A stretch of 64,000 nucleotides of DNA from Trichosphaerium sp. ATCC 40318 (taxonomy: Eukaryota > Protista > Tubulinea), in contig JALMLS010000052.1 of NCBI GenBank assembly GCA_038496445.1, forward strand, positions 79,706 to 143,705, written 5' to 3'. Of the stretch, positions 2,506 to 61,851 are shown in pieces. The notes beneath the pieces are model-generated. The model worked only from the letters and a program-made list of their open reading frames with translations. It searched no databases and was not told the origin of the DNA. Both the position numbers and the translations under genes were made by a program. The number at the start of each line of letters is the position of its first letter. Position 1 is the first letter of the stretch.

Positions 2506-4401
2506 ATGCATCGTCTCAACGTTCATATAGCAATACTGGCCTGTGTCATCGTGTTTACGTGCGGTAGTTTGCAGTATACTATACTGCCTGGGCCTTATAC
2601 TTGGAGTGACGCCGTTAGCGCGTGTATTGCAAAGTACTAGAGTGTTTTTGTTGGTTTTTGTAACGTTTACTGTTTAGCGGGCAACAAATTGCCGAAATTC
2701 ATAACGCACAAGATTTTAATGCCATGGTACCGCTTGTAACGGTGCACACTTGGCTTGGAGGAAAACAACGAGACTCTTTACCACTTTCAACTTGTCTGGC
2801 AGGGTACGACCATATATACAACGATTTACCTGGTATCAAATGATTGAATACTGCATCTTCAATTATCCAAAACGGTCTTGTTTGACTGCTCGTTTACCAG
2901 AAAATAACATTTTCTAGTGATACTGGTAGCTTGTTCGATTGTGCATGTGATAGCTGTGTAACTAGTGCCTCATTCTGCCCCGATTGCCAAAATCACCTTG
3001 ACGGATATTATTGGCTAAGTAATAGTGCTGTTTCGTTGATTTCAACAGATCTATACACTAGCAGCACGTGAGTGCCTTTCCAAAAAACAAGTAATCTAAC
3101 TTTGTTTAGAAATATTACGAGCTATCTAACGACGTACTGGACGGACAACAATCCAACTATAGTTCTTGGAGCTACGGGTACTGAGCGACAGGAGTGTTTG
3201 GAAATGCTTAGTACAACGAAAAAATTGAACGATGGAGCTTGTACAGCCATGAGAGCTGTAGCGTGCCAACCTTTACCACCAACCACTACGCCACCTACAA
3301 CAGAAACCCCAACTACTATACCTCCTACAACAGAATCTCCTACAACAGAAGCACCAACAACACTTCCACCTACCACTGTATCTCCTACTACAGCGCCTCC
3401 AACAACAACAGCACCAACAACAGGTTCTCCAACTACTATACCTCCTACACCAGGTTCTCCAACTACTATATCTCCTACAACAGAATCTCCCACAGGTTCT
3501 CCAACTACTATACCTCCCACAATAGGTTCTCCAACGACAATAGTACCTACTACAGAGGCTCCAACAATGATGCTAGCAAGCACTAATTGTAAGACTTACT
3601 ATTTTTTTCAACAAACACTTTTTTCTTTCTAATTGTTACTTCAGTCAGCTTGCGTTTCTCAAAGCCTCTATCGATCACTGAGGTTGATTCTTTTGCTAAT
3701 CTCATTGCTCCTGTATTCGGTGTCCGTGAGGAGTTTATATCAGCTAAATCAGAAGGAACTAGCTCTAAAAGGCAAGCTTCGAACACTGTTGTAGTAACAG
3801 TAACTCAAGATCCACGTACGGGAAATCAAAGGCTTACCTTAACATATGTACTAATTAACCCTTACTTTTAGTTGTTTCTGAACCTATATCAGACTTTGTA
3901 GATAATAAACTATCCGATCCAGCAACATTTGTTAGTGTTCAACTAATAGCATCAGATAACTTTGGTGCTGATGTTGAACTTGTTGGTGCATTATTACCAC
4001 AAGAAGAAGAACCACCAACACTTGGATTTCGTAATGGATATATCTTTGGTATAGCTATTTTGATAGGTACAACGCACTTACTTTTAATGGCAGTTTGTAA
4101 CATGTCAAAAAACTTTTAGCTTTAGTTGTTGATTGTTAATTGCGTGATGTTTTTCGTAGTTCTTGTCGTTGTACTTGTAGTACTTATTGTGCTGGTTGTT
4201 TTAATACAACAACGAGCTAGCGCTAATAAGATTAACAAAGCTGCGGCTGAATATAGAAGATCTGCATCTTCTAAAGTAATGAATAAGGTAAGCAACAATA
4301 CAACATCAATATTTTTGTTAATATTTGTTATTCATTAGGGTGAAAGCATTGGTGTATTTAATTCTCCAAGATCAGACACTGAACTCATAGTGGCAAATTG
4401 A
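2506..4401 (+). CDS. Type I membrane protein: signal peptide, C-type lectin-like domain, Pro/Thr mucin-like stalk, TM helix, short tail
   Basis: MHRLNVHIAILACVIVFTCG signal; YTWSDAVSAC...QIAEIHN...TWLGG...YW...ECLEM...LNDGAC...VACQ resembles a CTLD; PPTTESPTT repeats; hydrophobic LVVVLVVLIVLVVLI followed by QQR. Confidence 0.7.
3270..3570 (+). repeat. Imperfect 15/30-nt coding tandem repeat (PTTIPPTTGS-type), mucin-like stalk
   Basis: Recurrent ccaactactatacctcctacaacag / caggttctccaactactata units. Confidence 0.85.
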
Positions 4402-9077: not shown

Positions 9078-12000
9078 TTACATTTCCATGTCCATGTCAT
9101 CTAACATATTCATGCTATCATCATAATCGTTAACTTGTTGATTTCCTTGAATCTTTTCAATGTTAAAAACTAGGTTTCCATCCACTGCATCTATATGTAC
9201 GATAGCATTTGAGTCAAGTTTTTGTGATAAAATAAGCCTTGATAACTCCGTTGTGACGTTTCTCTCAATGAATCTTTTTAGAGGTCTCGCACCATACACA
9301 GGATCATATGTTTCTTCTGTGATGTACGTATAAGCATTATCTGTAAGCTTAATCCCGACATTTCGTTCAGCAAGTCGTTTTTGAAGGGCTGTGAATTGAA
9401 GTGTGACAATTTTTCTGATATCGTCTTGTGACAATGGAGAAAAGATGACCAAGTCATCCAATCTGTTCAAAAACTCTGGTGAAAAATGAGCTTTGACTTG
9501 ACCCATGACGATTTGTTTTGTCTGTTCAGAAATAACATTGCCCTTTGCTTGTTCAAGAAGTTGATGGGCGCCAATATTTGAAGTCTAAAAAAGAAAAAAG
9601 TAAGAAAGTGATTGATTTCAACTAACAGATTCTGTTAAGATACGTACCATAATAAGCACAACATTACTAAAATCTACTGTTTTCCCTTGAGAATCAGTTA
9701 ATCTGCCATCATCCATGACTTGAAGTAAGGTATTTAAGACAAGCTTATGTGCTTTTTCAATTTCATCGAAAAGAACAACAGAGTAAGGTCTTCTTCTCAC
9801 TGCCTCCGTTAGTTGGCCACCTTGTTCGTATCCAACATATCCAGGAGGTGCACCAATAAGTCTGGCAACGGCATGTTGTTCCATGTACTCTAAGGAAACA
9901 AGTTAACAAAAAATAACGAACGCTAAGGGTGTGCGTTATAATTACGAACCTGACATATCAAGTCTTACGATTAAGTTTTCGTCATCAAACAGCTCAGCTG
10001 CAAGTGCTTTTGCAAGTTCAGTTTTACCGACACCTGTAGGTCCAAGGAATAGGAATGATGCTGTAGGCTTTCCAGGTCGTGAAAGGCCAGCTCTTGATCT
10101 CAAAACTGCCTATTTTGCAAAAAGTTAGAACAAGGACACAAAAAAAATCTATTAAAAGTCGTACCTCTGCAACTGCCTTTACTGCTTCGTTTTGACCGAT
10201 AAGACGTTCATGAAGGTGCTTACCAAGGTCTAGAATCTTTTCCCTTTCAGTTTGGCCGAGTTTAGAAACAGGAATGCCAGTCCATCGAGAAACAACTTCA
10301 GCGATATGCTCGGCTGTCACGTTTTCAGTCAACAAAAAGTCTTCCTTTCTCTGCTCGATATCTTTTGCCATCGACTCGATAGCTTTTTTTGTTTCAGGTA
10401 TAGCACCATATTCAATATCAGCTACCCTACTCATATCGCCTTGTCTCTTCGCTATAGCCAATTTTCGTTTAAGTGCGTCCAACTTTAAGCGCATGTTTGA
10501 GATGTTATCGAATACGCCCTTCTCGTGGTCATATCGCAGTTTTAGGGGTTGTAGTTTTTCGTTAACGTTTGCTAGTTCCTTCTTGGCTTCCGTAAGCCTT
10601 GTTTTAGACCCTTCATCCTTTTCTTTTTCTAGATGTTTGATTTGAACTTGAAGGTGCATTGATCGCCTCTCAAGAATATCAAGTTCTTCGGGTTGAGAAT
10701 CAAGTTGTACTCTTGCTTTTGCGCATGCCTCGTCCATTAAATCAATGGCTTTATCTGGAAGGAATCTTTGGGTAACCTACAGAAATAACATTAGTACAAG
10801 CCAAGCACGACCAAACAACCGGAAAACTATCAAGAATTATTTTTCAAACTCAAAATGTTTTTGTACAGTTTTTACGTACATATCGATCAGATAGACTAGC
10901 ACATGCTACCAATGCGGCATCTTGTATACTGACACCATGGTGTGTTTCGTATTTTTCTTTGATACCTCTAAGAATAGAGACAGTATCTTCAACAGAAGGT
11001 TCATTTACAAGGACTTGCTGAAATCTCCTTTCGAAAGCAGCATCCTTTTCCATGTACTGTCGGTACTCATCAAGTGTAGTTGCGCCAATACAGCGTAAAT
11101 CACCGCGAGCAAGCATAGGTTTAAGCAAGTTGGCAGCGTCCATAGCACCATCTGTTTTACCAGCGCCAAGAACCAAGTGAATTTCATCAATGAAAAGAAT
11201 GATTTTTCCTTTTGATTCAGATACTTCTTGTAGCACTGATTTTAGCCTTTCTTCAAATTCTCCTCTATATTTTGCTCCTGCGACAAGTGCACCCATATCA
11301 AGTGATATAACACGACAGTTCAAGTTATGAGGTACATCTCCAGAAACAATTCTTTGAGCGATACCTTCAACTATTGCACTAAATTTGCCGTTAGCTCAAA
11401 CGAATGAGAATTAACCTAAGAAAAGGTTGAGTTACGTTTTACCGACACCAGGGTCTCCAATTAGTACTGGGTTATTCTTTCTTCTTCGACTCAGAACTTG
11501 AATAACACGACGTACTTCATCATCTCTTCCGATAACAGGATCCAAGTCTGATGCTTCTGCTTGTGCTACTAGATCTCTTCCATACTTTTCAAGACATTCA
11601 TATGTGGCTTCAGCACGTTGTGTTGTTACTTTTTTCTTCCCTCTGACTTGTTTTACGGCTTCGAGAAGACGAGACTACAAAGTTTTTTTTAGAAATTTCG
11701 TTTTTTTTCATTCTTAGCATACTACGTACCTCGTTTAGGCCTCCTTGTTGGAAACAAGCATGTACCGTTTTATCTTTAGGTAATACACGCATCAAGTGAT
11801 CAAGAGAAACAAAGTGGTCTCCATTTTCGGCCTGTTTTTTTCTTGCCGCTTGAAATATTTTTGACAGATCAATAGATGGCGCTGGATGTTGTGGAGGAGG
11901 GTTTTGACGCGGAATTCTTAATATTTGTTGCTCTAAGGCTTGTTCTAAAGGCGTATTAGGCGATTAATAAAATAAACACTAATTACGTACGTATTTTCTT

Positions 12001-12910: not shown

Positions 12911-19550
<6,640 letters not shown>

Positions 19551-20428
19551 CTGCAATTTTTGTTTCTGTCAACTACCTTTTGTAATTACGAGTGTTGGTT
19601 TATAAATAAAAAATAATACGCTCTATTTGTAGTTCCTTTGTAATGCCCATAGTCAAAGTGTTGAGAAAACCAGTATTGACTGTTTTGTACTATGTTTCAA
19701 TGTCTATGAACGTGAAGTACACAAATACTTGACCACTAGTGCTGCTGATGTTAATATGCACAAAAAAGCAAGAAAAAATACATTAGTTTTTTTTTTTTGA
19801 ATTGATGTGCAATCGATTGGTCGTATGTATTAGAAAGGTTCAATCTATTGACACTGAAATAAAATCCACTACTTTAAGTATACTATAATTGCGTAAAGTT
19901 GTAACATGGTGGTGAGATATCAGTTAATAAACCGAAATAGTTTTTGAATGAAAAAATCTATCATAAGTGTGAGTAATTTATGACAGAGATAACCGTAAAA
20001 ATGGTAAGTAATTGTTATTATTTATTGAACTATGCAAAGTCAGTGTAGTGTTAACGCTATTTTTTTGTGTAGCTATTTGGGCTCGAAACACTGCTGTTAC
20101 TATATCTAATTGCAGATTTAATGAGTGCTATGATTATAGTATACATCTAATCGAAGGCAATATGGTACACTAGTTTTTGACATTAAAAACTGATACTATC
20201 TCTTGTTCTGTTGTCAGCAACAAAAAATACTGTGCTACTATAGTGCTAATTCAAGAGGAGATGCACCGTCACCTGGTTCTATCATTTTGTTTTCAAAATG
20301 GAAAAAGTATTAGGCGAAAAATCGTTACAGTGGTTGAATGGCAAATAAACTATTTATAAGCACCAAACACTCTACAGATAAAACACTTTATTTACATACT
20401 GACAAGGGCGGTATCTTTTTTTTTTGGT

Positions 20429-23400
20429 TTACTTGGAACCACAAAACTGAGCCTTCCAGTCTAACCAATCGTTGACTTGTATGAATTTTTTTTCAAAAAG
20501 AACTTTGATCTTCTTTTTCTTAAAGAATAATCCAGATATAGCTTCAGTTGATTGTTGATTACCAATATCATTACCACATTTACAATATAATTTACCTATT
20601 TTAGATGCAACTCTTTCTTCAAGATGCTCAACAACCATATTTTTTTTTTCCAAAAAATCAAAAGTTTTTTGAATCATAACCAAATGCTTCCCTTGTTGTC
20701 CGGGGTACTGCAAAGGTATAAAATCATTTGATGTACCTAATATAATACTACACTTTTTACAGCATAAAAGAATATCAGACTGCTTTGTATCTTGTTTAAG
20801 TATAGTAGAAGTAGAAACTGAACTTTTTTTTTGTTGCTGTTGTTTTTTTTTTTGAAGATTAGGATCTTGCCAAGACTTGTTAAGTACGCCCATTTTTTTA
20901 AGCGCATCTGCGCATGCAAGAAGTTCTGCTGTTTTTTTTGTTTTATGAGAAGCTCTACCATGAGTAAATTGTGTTTTTGTATAGAAAGTAGGAGGTATTG
21001 GTGCCTAATAGAACATAAATAAACAAAGCAAATTCAAAAAGTAGAAAAATTGTTTCTTTTGTTTTTATGTTGTTTCGCCTTCCTTGTTTTTTGACGAGTT
21101 ACAAATAGAGGAAGGCTAAAGCATACAAATTGCCATCTTTTTAGAGGTTGTAAAACTTATCACAACAAGGCAACAAACAGCAATGTGTCAAACAAAAAGT
21201 ACTCAAAAAAATTTCTGTTTTACCTTGACTATAAATTCTCTGTTTGTCTTATCTTGTTCGTATGTATATACTAATTTCCCTCTGGCTCTTTGCCAGTAGC
21301 TGTGTAGCATGACTTTTGGGTTTTGGTCGACTTTACGTAATTTAGATAATACTGGTAATGTCTGCAAAAAGAAATACATAAAAAATGAGATAATTCGGGG
21401 GTTGTGTGTTCATACCTTGTTTGCTTCGCTAGCTATAATATTAATGAGATCATCAATATGATCTTTTGGTATTGAGCGCCCATTCTAGATGTTCTTTCAT
21501 GAGTTTCAATGTCACCTTAGACAAAAAATTTCGTACCTTTCTCAAACATTCACTTATTACGCTAAGGTAAAAAAACACGTGAGAAACAGAAACTAAGAAT
21601 TCGGTCTTGTATTTACCTTGGCTTTGCTGTCTTATCAGTACTCTGTAGTATGGCTTTCCCAACTTTCTCTCCAATACCAATTGCATTGTATTTACTCATA
21701 ACAATACTACAAAGACGTAACTAACCAACAAAATGGTGTAGAAAATAAAAATAACACAAACCTTGGGTTCACATCCTCTTTGCGCCCTACAGCATCTCGC
21801 CATTGGTACACTGCAAGAGCGACTGATTTCTACTATCATCAGAATTGAATATATAACGAATAAAATACCTGTAGTTCGTTTAAAGGAGCTCCCTTAGCTT
21901 TTCTCCAATCGCGAAGATGTTTTCCTAAAAAAGTGTCAGTACAAACGAACACAAAGAGCGTTCAACGTACGTAAAGCGTCTTTAATGCTTCTGTTATGAT
22001 TCTCCCACATTTTGAGCGTCATATCTTGACAATTCTCCCAAGCCACGTGTAACAACGTTTTACCCTTACCTACAGAAGTAGCCAAAAATTAAAAATCTAC
22101 GAGAGCAGTTTGGATTCAGTACGTACTCGTCAATGCTTTGTTTGGTTCCTCTAGGCTATCAAGAAGACGTGCTATACGTCTAAAGATATATACAAGATAA
22201 TGTGAGTCCAATCTAGCGTAGTGAGTCATCACAGCACTCCATGATTTGATAGGCTGTCTCCAATCGCTTCTTGCTAGTTCTTTCGTTTTAGGTTCGTTAC
22301 AAAAGTAGTCTAACAGCCCGCCAAGGCTTACTCTAACAAAGAATATAAGAAGAAAGAACAATCTAAAGCACAGATATCTCTTGACGATATTACAAGACAC
22401 TCGTACTTGTCTGGACCTTCATTGTTTTCTCCTGCATGCTCTAATAAAACAAGATTAAAAATTAAAGGAAGAGAAAAAAATATGCGTGATCGATTACCTT
22501 TGTACAGTTCAATGCCAACTTGTGTATCGAATACATTAACAACATATAAACCAAAGTCACGTTGTAACCAAATAAGATCTTGATCGGCTCTAAAGAAATA
22601 AAATAAACAACTGATACATTCTAAAAAGTGATTTTTTTTTCTACTGTTTCCAAGGATGTGTGGTCGTTTGTTCGTACCCGTGAAGTATCTTCAGGATCTT
22701 AGTATTATTAAATGGCTCATTTAGGATATGAATATGATCACGAAGAGCTAAACCATCAACAAGAAAATCGTGGGAACGCGGATCATTACTAGAGTTTTGA
22801 ACTGAGATTTGAATGATACATGTCATGCCGTAATACGAATAATCCATGTGTTGCTATAGCGCACGTTAAACAACACATAAACAAGTACATCATAGCATAG
22901 TACAACAACCCCAGTCGTACACTACAAAGAAGAAAAAAAAAAGCGAAAAAAAACCGTTTGTTGGTGACGTGTTTTATTTACCTCTGTATCTACACCGAAG
23001 CATTTGACTTTATTCAAAACGTTTACTAAACTAGCCAATTGTTGTTCTGTTTCAACTATCGTTAGATTTTCTTCCTTCATCTTAGTAGCGGGCTAAAGGC
23101 AAGGCGTTAGAATGGAGTTGAGTTATTGTTAAATCAGTTGTAGTATTTGACGCCTGTCATTCTACAAACAGCGCTAACGCGCTAGCAGTGACTGTGGATA
23201 AAAGCTCAGCCCAGAAACAATTACTCATAAAAAAACCGAAAAGATCTCTAAGAGGAGTATATCGCCTGCGATCAGGTTCTTTTTACGTACTGGTGTTGGT
23301 ATATCATCCTTCCAAGTGTATTGAGAAGGCTGTTTACAAAGCAGTTAACAATCTGTTATGTTTAAATGTGTCACTCACGTCAATGGTGCTTATCAAGTCA

Positions 23401-23754
23401 TTAATTTCGTGTTTGAAAGGGTGTTCGTATGGCGGATTAGAGTATGACGCTAAAATAGACAAAATAAATATCAAAGCCATTGGAAGTACTCCCGCACGTA
23501 ATGGATAAGCACTGTGGTACTTTTTTAACAGTTTAGGCTTTATTGGACCAGCGTTGTTATTAACACCTCTTTTCGCGTTGGCCACGCGTCTGAAACAACG
23601 ACATAAGACAAGGAGTCGACATTGCCGATGTCTATTTTCAAAAAGCGACGTACGGTGTTAGATGTGATCGGAATACGCTTTTCACAGCCATGGAGATACG
23701 TTTGTGACGGAATGAGGATGAAAGGTCAACTGGGGTCGCGGAATGGCATTCCAT
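20429..23754 (-). CDS. RRP6-like DEDD-Y 3'-5' exoribonuclease + HRDC + dsRBD + RIG-I/MDA5 CTD-like zinc domain (start ATG 23754 or 23691)
   Basis: HPFKHEI; ExoI FGVDTE|QHMDYSYYGMTCIIQIS; ExoII LHG|ADQDLIWLQRDFGLYVVNVFDT; ExoIII DWRQ...YARLDSHYLVYI; HRDC AVYQWRDAVGRKEDVNP; dsRBD NPKVMLHSYWQ...GRASHKTKKTAELLACADALKKMG; terminal CKKC...GKLYCKCGNDIG. Confidence 0.85.
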
Positions 23755-23893: not shown

Positions 23894-24883
23894 TTAAATG
23901 GGTGTGTAACAAACAGTACACCAGCATCTCGATACAAAAGTATTGTGCATCAGTATACAACCAATTGGAGTCACTGCTCCAAGACCAATCAACGCATTTT
24001 TACAACCATTATCCTTACATCCTGGAGCATTAATGCCGCATGTTTGAGTTAGAGTGATGTCGCTCTGTGGTACACAAGCACAAACACGTTCTGTACCACC
24101 AGCTAAGAAATCACGTGAGTTGAGAAGAGCTTGATACTTGGAAAAGACGTACCAGGGAGGTATCTGTGGTACAATTTACATTCTGTTCCTTCCGTCTGCG
24201 ATTGGCAGCCATTATCTTGGCATCTTCCTAAGAATGGATTCCATCTACAGCATCCCGTTGACTAGACAACACGTGTGAGTAAAAAACGAGGTCGAAAGGC
24301 CGATAGCTTACTACTGGAGGCTCAGTTGGTACTGGTGGTTTAGTAGTAGGTGCTCTTGTAGTTGGCGCTGGTGGATCGCAACAGCAGCAAGCACACTCTG
24401 CAGATGCCTTATGGAATGCGTCGTTAGGACAACAACGAAGCTCGAAAACGTCTGTCGTCTTTTTACATTCATTTACAGTCATAAGAGGTTTACCCAAAGC
24501 ATTACACTTTCTAAATAGTACGAAACAAGTTAGTAAAACTTCAATACGAAGGAAGCTCTCCGACTAAAAAGACCGAATCACGTGGGAATAATTTAATTTT
24601 GGTTTCTAAAGTTTTTCGGGTTCAAAGTAAAGAGATGGCTCTTGAAAAGGATAAATATATTACATGTTACGTACGCTTGACATGCTTGTTTTGCTGATAG
24701 TAATGCGTCATCACAAGCTTCTGTTTTATTACAAGACGATTCAATAACAACGCCTGAGTTTACAGGAACGCAAGGCTGACAGAATACCTAGTTGAAGTTA
24801 GACCCGAGAGATACTCAAGTAATACGTACCGATGCTAAGAGACATGCGGCAGCAAGACAAACAAGTAGAGAAGAGACCCTCAT
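23894..24883 (-). CDS. Small secreted cysteine-rich protein with Pro/Thr linker
   Basis: Signal MRVSSLLVCLAAACLLAS; Cys-rich N-domain ending CACCCC; PPAPTTRAPTTKPP linker; two related C-terminal units (CQDNGCQ...CKLYH...VCAC and CKDNGCK...CILMH...RCWC); stop at 23896-23894. Confidence 0.7.
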
Positions 24884-38564: not shown

Positions 38565-39465
38565 TCATTCGCACTCTTCACCATTACGGAAATTACAGCG
38601 CTTCATCAATGACCCATCCTCATGCCACTGTTCATACTCTCCTTCTCGTTTTCCATTGATATAATGGCACTGCCTCTTCAATTGACCATTCTGATGCCAG
38701 TGTTTGTACTCTCCTTCTAGTTTATCATTGATATAATAAGACTGCAGCATCAATTGGCCATTATAATGCCACCGTTTGTTCGCTCCTTCTTGTTTATCAT
38801 TGATATAGTTACACTGCCACTGCAATTGCCCGTTGTGATGCCAACGTTTGTACTCTCCTTCTCGTAAACCATTCGCATAACTGCTCTGCTCCATCAATTT
38901 CCCATTATCATACCAACGCTTGTACTCTCCTTCTTGTTTACCATCCACATAATTGCGCTGCTCAAACAATTGGCCATGGTTATGCCACCACTTGTTCTCT
39001 CCTTCTTGTTTATCATTGATATAGTTACACTGCCACTGCAATTGCCCGTTGTGATGCCAGTGTTTGTACTCTCCTTCTCGTTTACCATCCACATAATTGC
39101 ACTGCGCTTCCAAACGGCCATTCGTGTACCATCTCTTGTATTCTCCATTTTGCTTACCATGCAACCAATGCTCAGTCTAATATAGGAATAAACAATGAAG
39201 AAAAAAAAAAGATGTCACTTTTTTTGGACAAATGCTAACATACCGCCATGTAGTAGAGAAATGTTTGTTTCCATTTTCCATGTTTTTTCAAGTCACCATC
39301 AAACCTTGTCATCATTGCCGCCTGTTTCGAAAGAAGTGGCCAAATTAAATATGCTGATAGGTCTAAATCGATGATATCGAGTTGAATCTCAACTGGAAGT
39401 GCTAAAAGATGGCAATAATCTGATTCTACAGTAAATCTCTCTTTCCTGGCTGTTAGGTTCATCAT
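38565..39465 (-). CDS. F-box-like + MORN-variant (24-aa) repeat protein, two exons (intron 39177-39243)
   Basis: Exon 1 LLALPVEIQLDIIDLDLSAYLIWPLLSK (F-box-like); exon 2 about 8 repeats of GK(R/Q)EGEYKRWYxNGQL..QCNY. Confidence 0.8.
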
Positions 39466-48838: not shown

Positions 48839-51800
48839 CTAAGATTGTGTACTCCCAGGACCAACTCGTCGTCTCACAATCTTATTAACCCATTGTCCAC
48901 CACCAGGATTATTCTCACTTGTGAGACTCCTTGTCTTTGAAAGCATTTGAAGCATAGACTGAGTGTGATCCTTATTTTTCTTAAGGAAAGCATTCAAGTT
49001 CTCAGCATCATGAGGATGAGCAATAACAAAATCACAGCTAGGGTATCCTACAAATAAAATCAAAAAGACATAACCCATTTAAAAAGAACTATTTCTTCAA
49101 AAAGCACGTGGGGGTCTGTGACAAACGCGAAAACTAAAAGTTTTTTGTTGCAACCGAAAAAAAACAGACGAGGAAGAAAAATCTTATCTGACGCCTTGTA
49201 CTGTACCTTGTGCTTTACATCTTACTTCCACAGCAAGAATAGGGCTTTCAAAGTATTTTTCAAACCATCCGCTTAGATACCCTGCACACATAAGACAAAC
49301 AGGTGTCTTTGATTTTTTATCAGTTGTTTTGCAGTAAACGTCTGCTTCAAAGCTTGAAGAGATATTAATGTTCATCTCAATAGACATCTTTGCTATAGTT
49401 GGATCATCTGTTAAAGGATATATAGCACCGTTACACCATCCATGGAAACTCATATTAGCAAGTACACCACCCTTCGAAAAAGTAAACAAACGTTATGTAA
49501 TTAATATTGGCGTACTTTGATGCTTGCAGAGCGGAGTGAATTTGGGATGATACTCGCTCGGAAAGTAGAAAAATCAGCCTTTCCTATTACACAAGCAATG
49601 TCGTAGATAACATTAACAGCAAACTCTTTATCAAGGTCCTAAAGGAAGAAAAAAAATGAACAACAAAAACAAGGGCAAAAAAAAACGGTAAATACCTTGG
49701 ATACATCTTCTCCAAACAATCGTTTAATAAACGTTTCACACTCTGTAAATAACGAGCTAGCTCGTACTAACATATACTCTTGTTTATCAACCTTAATTAG
49801 ACTCCTAAAAACCCCAAAAAGTCAACACGAAGCCCATCAAGAACCAAAGAAAGGGAAAAAAATAGCAGGAAATTTGAGTTTCAAACGCACTTATTAGGTT
49901 CTAAAGATAGTTTATCAAAGTAACGTAATATAGAGGACTCCAAACGGGTATCGTTTTCTTTCCTAAAAAAAAACTTAACATCAGAAGATCACGAGAAACT
50001 TTAAACACGTGTTCCAAAAAAAAAAAAATAACAAAGAGCAAGTACCCTTGACTATGTGGTGGCTTAGGCGTAGATGGTTTAGCCATACTACCTTTTGGCA
50101 TTACACCCTTTGGTGTTGTAGGTGTACCTACTTGTACACGCCTACGCTTCTTCTTTGAACCATCTTCCTTAGAGTCACTCAACTAACAAACATAAACAAC
50201 CTCCCTTCGACAGAGTTGAAAAAAAAAAAAGTGTACTTCTGTGCTATCTGTATTAGAAGAGTTAACGCTCTTAACCCTACTAGCCGATTTCCCTCTAGGT
50301 CTTTGGAAACGATTAATCTTAGGTTTCTTTGGCGTTGACCTCCTTGTTCGGCGTTCTCTAGAGATATGTCTATGTAACTTCTCTAGCCCTGCCCTAAGCC
50401 AAGACTCTGCATCAGGACCCATACGATTCACTAAAGAGAAAATGTCAACAAACTAAATACAACAGTATCAGAGAAGCAGTAGATATAACGTACAAAGGAA
50501 CTTTGGGATTCTAACAGATTCCAGCACTGTTTCTGTAAGTTTATGAGGATTCTTTGATTTATAATCAGTAACACAAGATTGCAGTCTGTCATTTCTAGTC
50601 ATGACAAACCTACAAACAGGGTCTCCTCTTGCTCTACATAGTATCTCACATCCAACGAGATGTGTTTTCATAACTTTACGGCACCATCCTGTAAAATAAC
50701 CGCTACACATAACACATACTGGGTGTCTTGTATAGTCATCAACATCCTTTACTTCATTTTCTGTTTCTAATATTATGTTTAGCAAGTTTGTCATCAAGAG
50801 ATGTTGTTGCTGTTACCTTCACGAAGCCAAGATGAACATTCAAAAGACCTACTCTGGTCCCATATAAGTTTGAAATTATCAGCATCATCAAGAACACTCT
50901 CAGGATGTATACGACAAGAAGCCCAGCCCTGTGAACATATGTTAGTTTGAAACTACTTTGTAATAAACGCATACCTTAGCAGCAAGTATAGCTGGTAATG
51001 ACAGAAGTAATTCTTCTTGAGTTTCAAGATGAAGAGCTTTTTTATAAAACTCAACATCCTTAGCAGCGAGTGTAGCACCAAAATCATATAGAAAGTTACT
51101 GGCAAATGTGACTTGATCACGATAAGACTTAAACGCAAAAACGTCACATATGTGATCAAACACATAAGCAAAAGACTCTGCTTGTAGCAACAAGAAACGT
51201 TCTTGATTTGCGTTCTAATAATAAACCGTAAGAATCACGTGTCTTGGTTCACAAAGTGAAACTTTTAAGAATTATGTTGTTGAAGATCACTACATACCTT
51301 TCCAACTAAAATGACGCCCATACTTGGACTTTGAGACACATAAGAAAAAAATGATGTCACTGACTTTTCAGCACCAGACATAGCTTCTTTAAACCGTTTA
51401 GGAACCTCTACTAGGTTTGTGAGTCCCTTAACAGGTACCACTTTGGTAGAAAGTTGCTGTAAATGTCTAATAGGCGCTAAATTTTGGTCTGACACCTCAT
51501 TGCTCGCTGACGTTTGCTAATACCAAAGTTAGTCAAAACAAAACTATAACAAAGCAAGAATAATACGTACTGTTGAGTCAGTATCAGATGTTGTTGTCAT
51601 ATCTCCACCATAAGTTGGTTCATTTGAATCTGAATCAGATATCGTAGAAGGATTACTCCTAAACAAGAAGTTAAGAAAAAACAAAGAAAAAAAAATTGAA
51701 AGCAACAAAGTGAGTGACAAGTACCTGTATAGTTTAGTTTCACCAGCTCCTACTGGTAACGTCTAAATGAACAGTTAGTATAACTTCATTCTTCTATGAA

Positions 51801-60312: not shown

Positions 60313-61851
60313 ATGAGTTTCTCAGGCGTTTCAATAGAACAAGCACTAACGTATTTTACAAAGAAAAACACAGAAGCTTTCGTTAAAATAATGGCAAACC
60401 AACACCAACTGTTTATGACGCAACTTGAAAGTATTTTAGACCTCTCAAACAAACGTCTTACAGAAAATCTTGATAATCTTTTCAAAGACACGTATATGAT
60501 TGTTAACCCAAAGAAACATGTCCCAGCAAGAGCGAAAGACCTTGTACCACATTATGAGGGCACCACAAAGTCACCAGAGTGTAAACGAACACAAAAACAA
60601 GACGTGAGAGGCGAAGAGGCAATAAACATTCTCAAACTTCCAATTGAGATCATTGCGTCTATTATAAGGCAAACATCTTCAAAGTCGAGATTTCGTTTTG
60701 CCCAATCATGTCATTTGATGGCTGATATAATTCATACTATTGTTGGATATAAACAAGTTTGTCTTCATTCTCCTCAAGACATTTTAAAGATAAGACAGTA
60801 TAGAGGCATTAAAAACAATAGTATTATTACTCTAAAGTTTGATAATACTGTATATTCATTATTGGATGGCTGTCGTGATATAAGGGTCACTAGAAAATAT
60901 AGGTATATAACAGATAGTGATTTAAAAGCAATTTCAGGCAGTGTTCAGACCATTGATCTATCAAGATGTATGAATGTGACAGATGAAGGAATAAAGGAGT
61001 TAAAGGGTGTTCATACAGTTAATCTAAATGGCACGTCAGTTACAGACGAAGGCATTAAAGCACTTGCTGGCGTTCATACAATTTACCTTAATAGCACATC
61101 AATTACGGATAAAGGTCTTAAATATTTAAGAGGTGTTCACAAAATCAGTCTTCAACTCTGCAACCATGTTACAGATAGAGGGATCAAAGCATTAAAAGGT
61201 GTTCATACAATTTACCTTAATAGCACATCAATTACAGATAAAGGTCTTAAATATTTAAGAGGTGTTCGCAAAATCAGTCTTTCGTCCTGTTTCCAAGTAA
61301 CAGATAGAGGGATCAAAGCATTGAAGGGTGTTCAAAAAATTAATCTTGATAGCACTTCAGTTTCAGATGAAGGTATCAAAGCACTACATGGTGTTCACAA
61401 TATCATGATTTCAAATTGCAGACATGTGACAGATGAAGGCATTAAAGCACTTGCTGGAGTTCATATTATTTTCCTCAATGGCACTTTAGTAACAGACAAA
61501 GGTGTTAAAGCACTTGCTGGAGTTCATACAATTACCCTTGATAGCAGTTTAGTTACAGATGAAGGTATTAAGTGTTTGGCAGGTGTTCATACAATCAGTC
61601 TTTCATTCTGCAAACATGTAACAGATAAAGGGATCAAAGCTTTAAAAGGAGTTCATACAATTATCCTTAGTCAAACTTCAGTTTCAGATGAAGGTATAAA
61701 AGCCTTGAAGGGTGTTCATATAATATACCTGCGAAACACAAAGGTGACCAAAGAAGGCATTAAAGAACTTAAAGGTGCTAAGATTTATGTTGGTGGCACT
61801 TCAATTGATATTCACGATGATGAACTACGTGATTATAATGTACAAAAATAA
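60313..61851 (+). CDS. Intronless F-box + leucine-rich-repeat protein
   Basis: Single ORF; F-box-like ILKLPIEIIASII..RFAQSC; about 13 LRRs of type GVHTIxLxxTxVTDEGIKAL. Confidence 0.85.
   Translation: MSFSGVSIEQALTYFTKKNTEAFVKIMANQHQLFMTQLESILDLSNKRLTENLDNLFKDTYMIVNPKKHVPARAKDLVPHYEGTTKSPECKRTQKQDVRGEEAINILKLPIEIIASIIRQTSSKSRFRFAQSCHLMADIIHTIVGYKQVCLHSPQDILKIRQYRGIKNNSIITLKFDNTVYSLLDGCRDIRVTRKYRYITDSDLKAISGSVQTIDLSRCMNVTDEGIKELKGVHTVNLNGTSVTDEGIKALAGVHTIYLNSTSITDKGLKYLRGVHKISLQLCNHVTDRGIKALKGVHTIYLNSTSITDKGLKYLRGVRKISLSSCFQVTDRGIKALKGVQKINLDSTSVSDEGIKALHGVHNIMISNCRHVTDEGIKALAGVHIIFLNGTLVTDKGVKALAGVHTITLDSSLVTDEGIKCLAGVHTISLSFCKHVTDKGIKALKGVHTIILSQTSVSDEGIKALKGVHIIYLRNTKVTKEGIKELKGAKIYVGGTSIDIHDDELRDYNVQK

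Follow-up and report, generated by a model that had tools for sequence, protein, structure and literature searches.

A predicted Yippee-type beta-tent domain follows a double-stranded RNA-binding domain in an Rrp6-like exonuclease gene of the amoebozoan Trichosphaerium

The stretch of DNA analysed here, called the window, comprises 64,000 nucleotides from Trichosphaerium sp. ATCC 40318 (positions 79,706 to 143,705 of contig JALMLS010000052.1), and all coordinates refer to it. On its minus strand we found a multi-exon gene with a 3´-5´ exonuclease of the Rrp6 type, a double-stranded RNA-binding domain (dsRBD) and, at the very end, a basic domain of 115 amino acids (aa) with two pairs of cysteines. 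An initial annotation, made from the sequence alone, had likened this last domain to the C-terminal domain (CTD) seen in RIG-I-like receptors (RLRs). Our analysis points, with high confidence, to another family: the domain is very probably a divergent zinc-binding beta-tent of the Yippee/Mis18 type, which shares a superfamily with the RLR CTD but is no member of the RLR family. That it binds zinc and adopts the beta-tent fold we infer from its amino acid sequence. The features of the domain, with residues numbered from its first amino acid, are:

20432..20776, minus strand: C-terminal 115-aa domain, predicted zinc beta-tent; best profile Yippee-Mis18, with RIG-I_C-RD sub-threshold
20750..20764, minus strand: first predicted zinc knuckle, C5-C6-K-K-C9 (CxxC), as read from the sequence
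20576..20584, minus strand: second predicted zinc knuckle, C65-K-C67 (CxC), 56 residues past C9
20504..20527, minus strand: basic run F84-F85-K86-K87-K88-K89-I90-K91; K86 stands at the last knuckle Cys +19, the register of RIG-I K888
20444..20473, minus strand: C-terminal motif N102-D-W104-L-D-W107-K-A-Q-F111, with no measurable profile signal by itself
20429..20431, minus strand: TAA stop codon of the exonuclease gene

The excised domain gave an above-threshold match to the Pfam profile Yippee-Mis18 (PF03226; 29.3 bits with a cut-off of 26.6, E = 1e-6, profile positions 2-71 of 108). The profile of the RLR domain, RIG-I_C-RD (PF11648), aligned to residues 4-110 (profile positions 3-108 of 117) but reached only 19.7 bits, below its cut-off of 25.6 (E = 1e-3). 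The At4g08330 beta-tent profile matched the same stretch faintly (E = 0.67). The profiles for MsrB (SelR) and CULT, searched in Pfam with the excised domain, were not reported at E values up to 10, and both were rejected as the closest family. When the whole 191-aa exon or an open reading frame (ORF) of 243 aa was scanned, Yippee-Mis18 still scored above its cut-off (27.0-27.1 bits), whereas RIG-I_C-RD was not reported by Pfam and appears only with the domain excised. Shorter fragments behaved similarly: residues 1-58 were matched by Yippee-Mis18 as the sole family (15.9 bits), residues 1-74 by Yippee-Mis18 with 29.9 bits and by RIG-I_C-RD with 16.0 bits, and residues 56-115 and 65-115 alone found no Pfam match. 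The C-terminal 41 aa, in which the initial annotation saw a basic patch and a terminal Trp motif, contribute about 3.7 of the 19.7 RIG-I_C-RD bits.

In the beta-tent fold, two meanders of four strands each, with the zinc at their apex, and an inserted hairpin form a cradle-shaped groove. The Yippee, Mis18, CULT, MsrB and RIG-I regulatory domains are roughly equidistant members of one fold with a shared ligand groove, and they often cross-hit one another in the twilight zone (PMC4287342). From this, a domain of the Yippee type that also matches the RIG-I profile, but more weakly, would be predicted. Of the proposed likeness to the RLR CTD, the membership of the beta-tent superfamily, the nearly full-length RIG-I_C-RD alignment and the location in an RNA-binding protein stand; the kinship with RLRs does not, since Yippee-Mis18 scores higher. 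With 29.3 bits against a sub-threshold 19.7, the domain falls on the Yippee side.

The sequence features on which the comparison was built (C/C-K-K-C, C-K-C, FFKKKKIK and the terminal Trp motif) are all found in the domain, and the exon is transcribed, as a complementary DNA (cDNA) contig, L001, covers it. The domain had been located correctly except for the end coordinate, which at 20775 was one base short and out of frame; in frame it spans 20432-20776. The two cysteine pairs, C6 (or C5)xxC9 and C65xC67, are spaced such that they would allow one zinc to be bound. With 18 lysines, an isoelectric point of 9.15 and a net charge of +7, the domain is basic, and its only tryptophans, W104 and W107, are near the C-terminus. 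It is encoded in an ORF of 154 aa (20429..20893, minus strand), which sits inside an open exon of 191 codons (21004..20432) that begins immediately past the acceptor tattag (21010-21005, minus strand). An open frame of 191 codons has a chance probability of about 4e-7 in DNA with 33% GC. This value, the transcription of the exon and the two profile matches (E = 1e-6 and E = 1e-3) argue that the domain is more than a chance pattern. Comparison of the last exon in the genome with L001 revealed three mismatches (20620, 20684 and 20735, minus strand), two of them silent and one changing E53 of the domain to K; these differences point to variation between strains or alleles and are too few to test for selection.

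The remaining parts of the gene are:

20373..23724, minus strand: transcribed unit covered by L001; 14 blocks, every junction GT..AG
23724-23654, 23589-23498, 23449-22982, 22853-22678, 22589-22498, 22440-22407 and 22332-22127, minus strand: L001 blocks 1-7
22069-21971, 21924-21869, 21829-21762, 21706-21617, 21561-21537, 21484-21224 and 21004-20373, minus strand: L001 blocks 8-14
23378..23330 and 23290..23093 (or ..23081), minus strand: two further candidate retained introns in L001, not seen spliced
22161..23062, minus strand: Rrp6/RNase D-type 3´-5´ exonuclease in five exons (PF01612, DNA_pol_A_exo1, 127.5 bits)
21691..21829, minus strand: HRDC-like segment, a weak partial match (20.9 bits with a cut-off of 23.8, profile positions 2-29 of 68)
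21362..21415, minus strand: 54-nt GT..AG intron separating the HRDC exon from that of the dsRBD (L001:1547-1600), retained in L001
20891..21319, minus strand: dsRBD, split by a 219-nt intron (21005..21223); coding parts 21319..21224 and 21004..20891
20777..20890, minus strand: low-complexity linker rich in K, Q and S, from the dsRBD to the beta-tent
20387..20392, minus strand: AATAAA signal, 14 nt ahead of the L001 3´ end at 20373

L001 is a JGI transcript contig of 2382 nt that is 99-100% identical to the window. The introns between its blocks are 39-219 nt long, and the 115-aa domain forms the end of the last exon of this transcribed gene of 14 exons. Two main ORFs are present in L001, one of 339 aa with the exonuclease and the weak HRDC match, and one of 243 aa (P0001) with the dsrm and Yippee-Mis18 matches. 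Protein searches were run per exon and with these natural ORFs. Only the retained 54-nt intron separates the two ORFs, its second codon being an in-frame TGA; according to coordinate arithmetic, its removal joins ...ASEANK to TLPVLSK... in frame. Further upstream L001 appears to retain two more introns and therefore looks like an incompletely processed RNA. With these removed (23378..23330 and 23290..23093), the upstream ORF and the exonuclease ORF would presumably share one frame. Since the frame is kept across the 54-nt intron and L001 looks incompletely processed, we infer from the sequence a single polypeptide that reaches from the exonuclease to the beta-tent. This conceptual protein has about 575 aa if the Met of the exonuclease ORF is taken as its start, and more with the two upstream introns removed; its order would be a linker of the Rrp6 type, the DEDD-Y exonuclease, the HRDC-like segment, the dsRBD, the K/Q/S-rich linker and the 115-aa domain.

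The 54-nt intron was treated in two distinct, non-productive ways in two assemblies of one culture (21331-21415, minus strand). Next to the retention in L001, the MMETSP product P0133 uses an alternative acceptor at 21331-21332, with 21330 as the first exon base, 31 nt further on, and the resulting intron of 85 nt shifts the frame and leads to a stop after 19 residues. Both treatments would give an exonuclease without the dsRBD and beta-tent module. These forms could be a regulated choice of isoforms or merely immature RNA.

The exonuclease carries the DEDD-Y residues (D31, E33, D96, Y172 and D176 of P0002), which are invariant in the alignment with its relatives (A1). Its nearest non-self relatives are of the Rrp6 type, with an identity of at most 35%, and two of them are named RRP6 by their source. 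The upstream ORF (L001:34-279) bears the sequence HPFKHEINDL, which resembles the Rrp6 linker (compare HPY..EL in P0003-P0005). A PMC2NT domain was not detected: Pfam finds no family on this upstream ORF, and the cDNA has its 5´ end at 23724. The gene therefore does not encode a canonical exosome-bound Rrp6. Upstream of 23724, the next ORFs on the minus strand look like a different gene rich in Thr and Pro; such mucin-like coding stretches with PTT/TTxP repeats are located at 24228-24497 (minus strand) and at 3072-3632 (plus strand), in two separate genes. The dsRBD is matched over the whole dsrm profile (27.5 bits with a cut-off of 23, positions 1-66 of 66), and P0001, the cDNA product, contains the junction of its two exons (REFIVK|APIPP). 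The initial annotation had described the domain as one without a helicase, and this holds: on the transcript ORFs Pfam gives only DNA_pol_A_exo1, a weak HRDC, dsrm and Yippee-Mis18.

The search for relatives of the 115-aa domain returned only the domain itself when phmmer was run against 1.84 billion protein representatives. A word-index protein search with the last exon yielded only the gene's own product, and a phmmer search of the PDB with queries of 154, 191 and 115 aa gave spurious matches to titin and p43 but no RLR, YPEL, Mis18 or CRBN chain. Metagenome and viral contigs scanned with P0001 contained no relative in either set, and no second copy was found in the window with tblastn. With the exonuclease ORF as bait we obtained nine non-self relatives, none with dsrm or beta-tent; this search covered proteins of 186-593 aa only, a range that would miss a full-length orthologue of 600-700 aa. 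The architecture of exonuclease, HRDC-like segment, dsRBD and beta-tent was seen in no other retrieved protein, and the 115-aa domain is a sequence orphan.

What might such a domain do in an exonuclease? The explanation that we favour, with modest confidence, is that the 115-aa domain is a Yippee-type beta-tent that serves as a substrate-end-binding accessory of a lineage-specific, Rrp6-like 3´-5´ exoribonuclease directed at double-stranded RNA (dsRNA). The dsRBD would anchor a duplex or a structured RNA, and the basic groove of the beta-tent might grip the RNA terminus or the terminal nucleotide. The flexible K/Q/S-rich linker would let the pair of dsRBD and beta-tent hand the DEDD-Y active site a 3´ end, which would then be trimmed or degraded. 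Such an enzyme could be an Rrp6 paralogue that works outside the exosome in RNA processing, silencing or surveillance. The binding of RNA ends by the 115-aa domain is the tentative part of this explanation, a suggestion by analogy on which we remain slightly on the doubtful side. It is proposed because the homologous groove binds RNA ends in the RLRs and uridine-like ligands in CULT (PMC4287342). In addition, a nucleic-acid ligand is favoured by the place of the domain, which comes behind a dsRBD in a nuclease that acts on RNA.

Several points weigh against this explanation. The Yippee-Mis18 alignment is limited to positions 2-71 of the 108 in the profile, and the second knuckle is CxC here, not the CxxC of Yippee. 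In addition, no F, W, Y or H is present in residues 68-83, the 16 residues past the second knuckle. This is the region of the ligand-cage positions, namely W82/Y84 in Yippee (a predicted cage), W99/Y101 in CULT and H111/F113 in MsrB (PMC4287342). Since aromatic residues and histidine are missing there, the 115-aa domain is not a typical Yippee domain either. AlphaFold2 runs with the single sequence (126 and 115 aa) gave no confident fold, with values of 35.6 and 40.0 in the predicted local distance difference test (pLDDT). No homologues were found in the protein, PDB, metagenome and viral sets described above. The productive junction between exonuclease and dsRBD is present in neither assembled transcript, as L001 retains the intron and P0133 uses the frameshifting acceptor. 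Finally, the Yippee-like domain of Mis18 is an oligomerisation module and not an RNA binder (PMC4818781).

The last point leads to an alternative that is rather unlikely in our view. Here the beta-tent would be a protein-protein module, with an oligomerisation like that of Mis18 or with a partner or degron binding like that of YPEL5 or CULT, and RNA would be contacted by the dsRBD alone. The best profile is indeed a joint model of Yippee and Mis18, the Mis18 domain is known to mediate oligomerisation (PMC4818781), and the aromatic residues for a small-ligand cage are missing. However, the strong positive charge of the domain, and its location immediately behind the dsRBD of a nuclease, agree better with contact to nucleic acid.

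Two further alternatives place the domain closer to the RLRs, and for both the RLR-specific residues matter. We compared these by register, counting from the knuckle cysteines with the published RIG-I numbering. The zinc ligands of RIG-I are C810, C813, C864 and C869 (PMC9557057), and its basic cleft, which binds the 5´ end, contains H847, K858, K861 and K888 together with F853, the aromatic residue that stacks on the terminal base pair (PMC10681732). The comparison gave:

RIG-I K858 (C864-6): K59 here, a match
RIG-I K861 (C864-3): K62 here, a match
RIG-I K888 (C869+19): K86 here, a match
RIG-I G874 (C869+5): G72 here, a match
RIG-I H847 (C864-17): V48 here, no match
RIG-I F853 (C864-11): E54 here, no match

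No aromatic residue is located within residues 42-63 of the domain. In shuffled sequences, three lysines in register had a probability of 0.0038 at a fixed register and of 0.065 with a slack of +-2, values that are post hoc and concern a domain with 16% Lys. The lysine register is therefore a lead for mutagenesis and no evidence of RLR membership.

It seems doubtful that the domain is a functional, perhaps evolutionary, intermediate between the Yippee-type beta-tents and the RLR CTD. It would then be a reader of duplex ends which, with the lysine cleft K59/K62/K86 and together with the dsRBD, steers the exonuclease towards dsRNA that is foreign or aberrant, the amoeba being heavily exposed to giant viruses. 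A genuine RLR-type CTD, closer to RIG-I, MDA5, LGP2 and DRH than to Yippee and Mis18 and acting with a basic cleft as a dsRNA-end sensor, the first outside animals, is improbable. The end-to-end alignment of RIG-I_C-RD (E = 1e-3), the residues K59, K62, K86 and G72 in RIG-I register with the lysine probability of 0.0038 at fixed register, the basic nature of the domain and its place after a dsRBD, and the likeness of the second knuckle, CxC, to that of MDA5 would fit such a sensor. The match is, however, below the cut-off and 10 bits under that of Yippee-Mis18, it is lost on the whole exon or ORF, and the C-terminal 41 aa add only the 3.7 bits or so mentioned above. Likewise, the lysine register loses weight with slack (0.065), being post hoc and in a domain with 16% Lys, and E54 and V48 occupy the positions of F853 and H847. 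Furthermore, no RLR protein was retrieved by phmmer from 1.84 billion proteins or from the PDB, and RLRs have been reported from animals only (PMC4287342).

Equally improbable is an exonuclease protein that usually lacks the C-terminal module, with the main mRNAs ending after HRDC and the dsRBD and beta-tent exons decaying or being used separately. Both assemblies break the frame at the 54-nt intron, L001 with the TGA and P0133 with the frameshift and stop. But L001 keeps at least two other probable introns and looks incompletely processed, and canonical GT..AG removal of the intron is in frame with the dsrm and Yippee-Mis18 matches intact. Moreover, downstream of it the frame continues without a stop through 237 codons of AT-rich DNA and past one more intron, which is correctly spliced; the last exon alone has a chance probability of about 4e-7. 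That there is no folded domain at all, and the cysteine pattern is a chance product within a Lys-rich low-complexity tail, would agree with the lack of homologues and of a confident AlphaFold model, but it is very improbable given a Yippee-Mis18 match above the curated cut-off (E = 1e-6) that spans both knuckles and an independent match to a second profile of the same superfamily (RIG-I_C-RD), and given that AlphaFold without an alignment often models poorly, so that a low pLDDT says little.

The preferred reading, a Yippee-type beta-tent as accessory of an Rrp6-like exonuclease, also affects the evolutionary suggestion of the initial annotation that the RLR CTD predates the RLR helicases. A single orphan that is closer to Yippee gives no such evidence. 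The suggestion adds little in any case, because the common ancestry of the RIG-I regulatory domain with the ancient Yippee, CULT and MsrB is already known (PMC4287342). Outside the RLRs, one study detected nothing similar to their regulatory domain (PMC3879448), and another reported a remote link only, to Yippee, CULT and MsrB (PMC4287342). A beta-tent on an exonuclease with a dsRBD is an unusual domain fusion and a new architecture, represented by one orphan in one species. Here an organism other than an animal has a Yippee-like beta-tent in a protein that is clearly directed at RNA. Should the domain indeed bind the ends of RNA, a testable nucleic-acid ligand would be at hand for the Yippee fold, to which no function is yet ascribed, and beta-tents would have been coupled to dsRNA-handling enzymes more than once. 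If it were the intermediate described above, RNA-end recognition by beta-tents would be an old eukaryotic solution that animals later joined to a helicase.

The origin of the gene outside animals, also proposed by the initial annotation, is borne out by P0133. This product is in the same 90%-identity cluster as the exonuclease ORF and bears the label MMETSP0405 with the taxon number 498012, that of the amoebozoan Trichosphaerium sp. ATCC 40318. The GC content of the window (0.33-0.41) and its short introns agree with the published draft genome of Trichosphaerium, which has 37.69% GC, a mean intron length of 75 bp and 8.7 introns per gene (PMC10521059). Genes of giant viruses are numerous in Trichosphaerium (PMC10521059). 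For the exonuclease gene a giant-virus origin was rejected, as no relative was found in the viral contigs and the gene has at least 13 spliceosomal introns and relatives of the Rrp6 type.

Further genes were observed in the window. Exons of a ClpB/Hsp104-type disaggregase are located at 9081-11323 (minus strand; ClpB_D2-small with 91.9 bits, plus AAA and AAA_lid_9). This family is described as absent from metazoans (PMC12283024), and the gene thus fits a non-animal origin. A multi-exon ABC transporter (15237-19550, plus strand), with an ABC_tran match on one exon and ABCC/MRP-like by eye, converges on the exonuclease gene and stops about 800 nt short of the 3´ end of the latter. Two neighbouring minus-strand ORFs, at 49187-49489 (33.5 bits) and 50471-50797 (35.0 bits), contain the mostly prokaryotic V4R domain and may represent a laterally acquired, duplicated gene. 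An intron-less gene for a leucine-rich-repeat (LRR) protein of 512 aa (60313-61851, plus strand) has its best relatives in other MMETSP transcripts (about 45% identity), probably paralogues. One weaker match among these is labelled Trichosphaerium. Numerous LRR proteins come next, and those that carry a name are mainly from Planctomycetota; the family thus seems to be expanded and might have a bacterial origin. An ORF of 199 aa at 38568-39164 (minus strand) consists almost wholly of MORN_2 variant repeats (118 bits).

Comparison with known systems shows where the gene resembles and where it departs from each of them. With Rrp6/EXOSC10 and Rrp6-like proteins it shares the DEDD-Y exonuclease core (127.5 bits), the linker motif HP(Y/F)..E(L/I) upstream and, judged by a weak and partial match, perhaps an HRDC segment after the exonuclease. 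The C-terminus of Rrp6/EXOSC10 is usually the exosome-binding region, whereas here dsRBD and beta-tent occupy this place, and PMC2NT was not detected in the ORFs examined. CULT of cereblon and MsrB belong to the same fold class as the 115-aa domain. Since the CULT groove binds uridine-like ligands (PMC4287342), a nucleotide end is a plausible ligand for the beta-tent fold. The conserved Trp cage of CULT is, however, missing here, W104 and W107 being the only tryptophans and lying near the C-terminus.

The CTD of the RLRs (RIG-I, MDA5, LGP2 and DRH-1/3; PF11648) has in common with the 115-aa domain the layout of two plus two cysteines and the role of a C-terminal accessory domain in a dsRNA-handling protein. 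The knuckles are 56 residues apart here compared to 51 in RIG-I, and the second one is CxC instead of Cx4C. The zinc ligands of MDA5 have the form CxxC...CxC, for which a literature search gave no confirmation. In contrast to the RLRs, the gene has no helicase or pincer, the partners being a 3´-5´ exonuclease and a dsRBD. The score is sub-threshold and unstable, the positions of F853 and H847 are unmatched, and the host is an amoebozoan.

The closest resemblance is to Yippee/YPEL and Mis18, whose profile is the best and above its cut-off and which likewise have two cysteine knuckles roughly 50-56 residues apart. The signal lies in the stretch past the first knuckle (...YPGQQGKHLVM...), and residues 1-58 suffice for a match. 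Yippee/YPEL proteins are small and stand alone, with about 120 aa, whereas the domain described here is strongly basic and fused as the C-terminal domain to a gene with a nuclease and a dsRBD. The Yippee family is spread across eukaryotes (PMC4287342), and from this spread its occurrence in an amoebozoan is to be expected.

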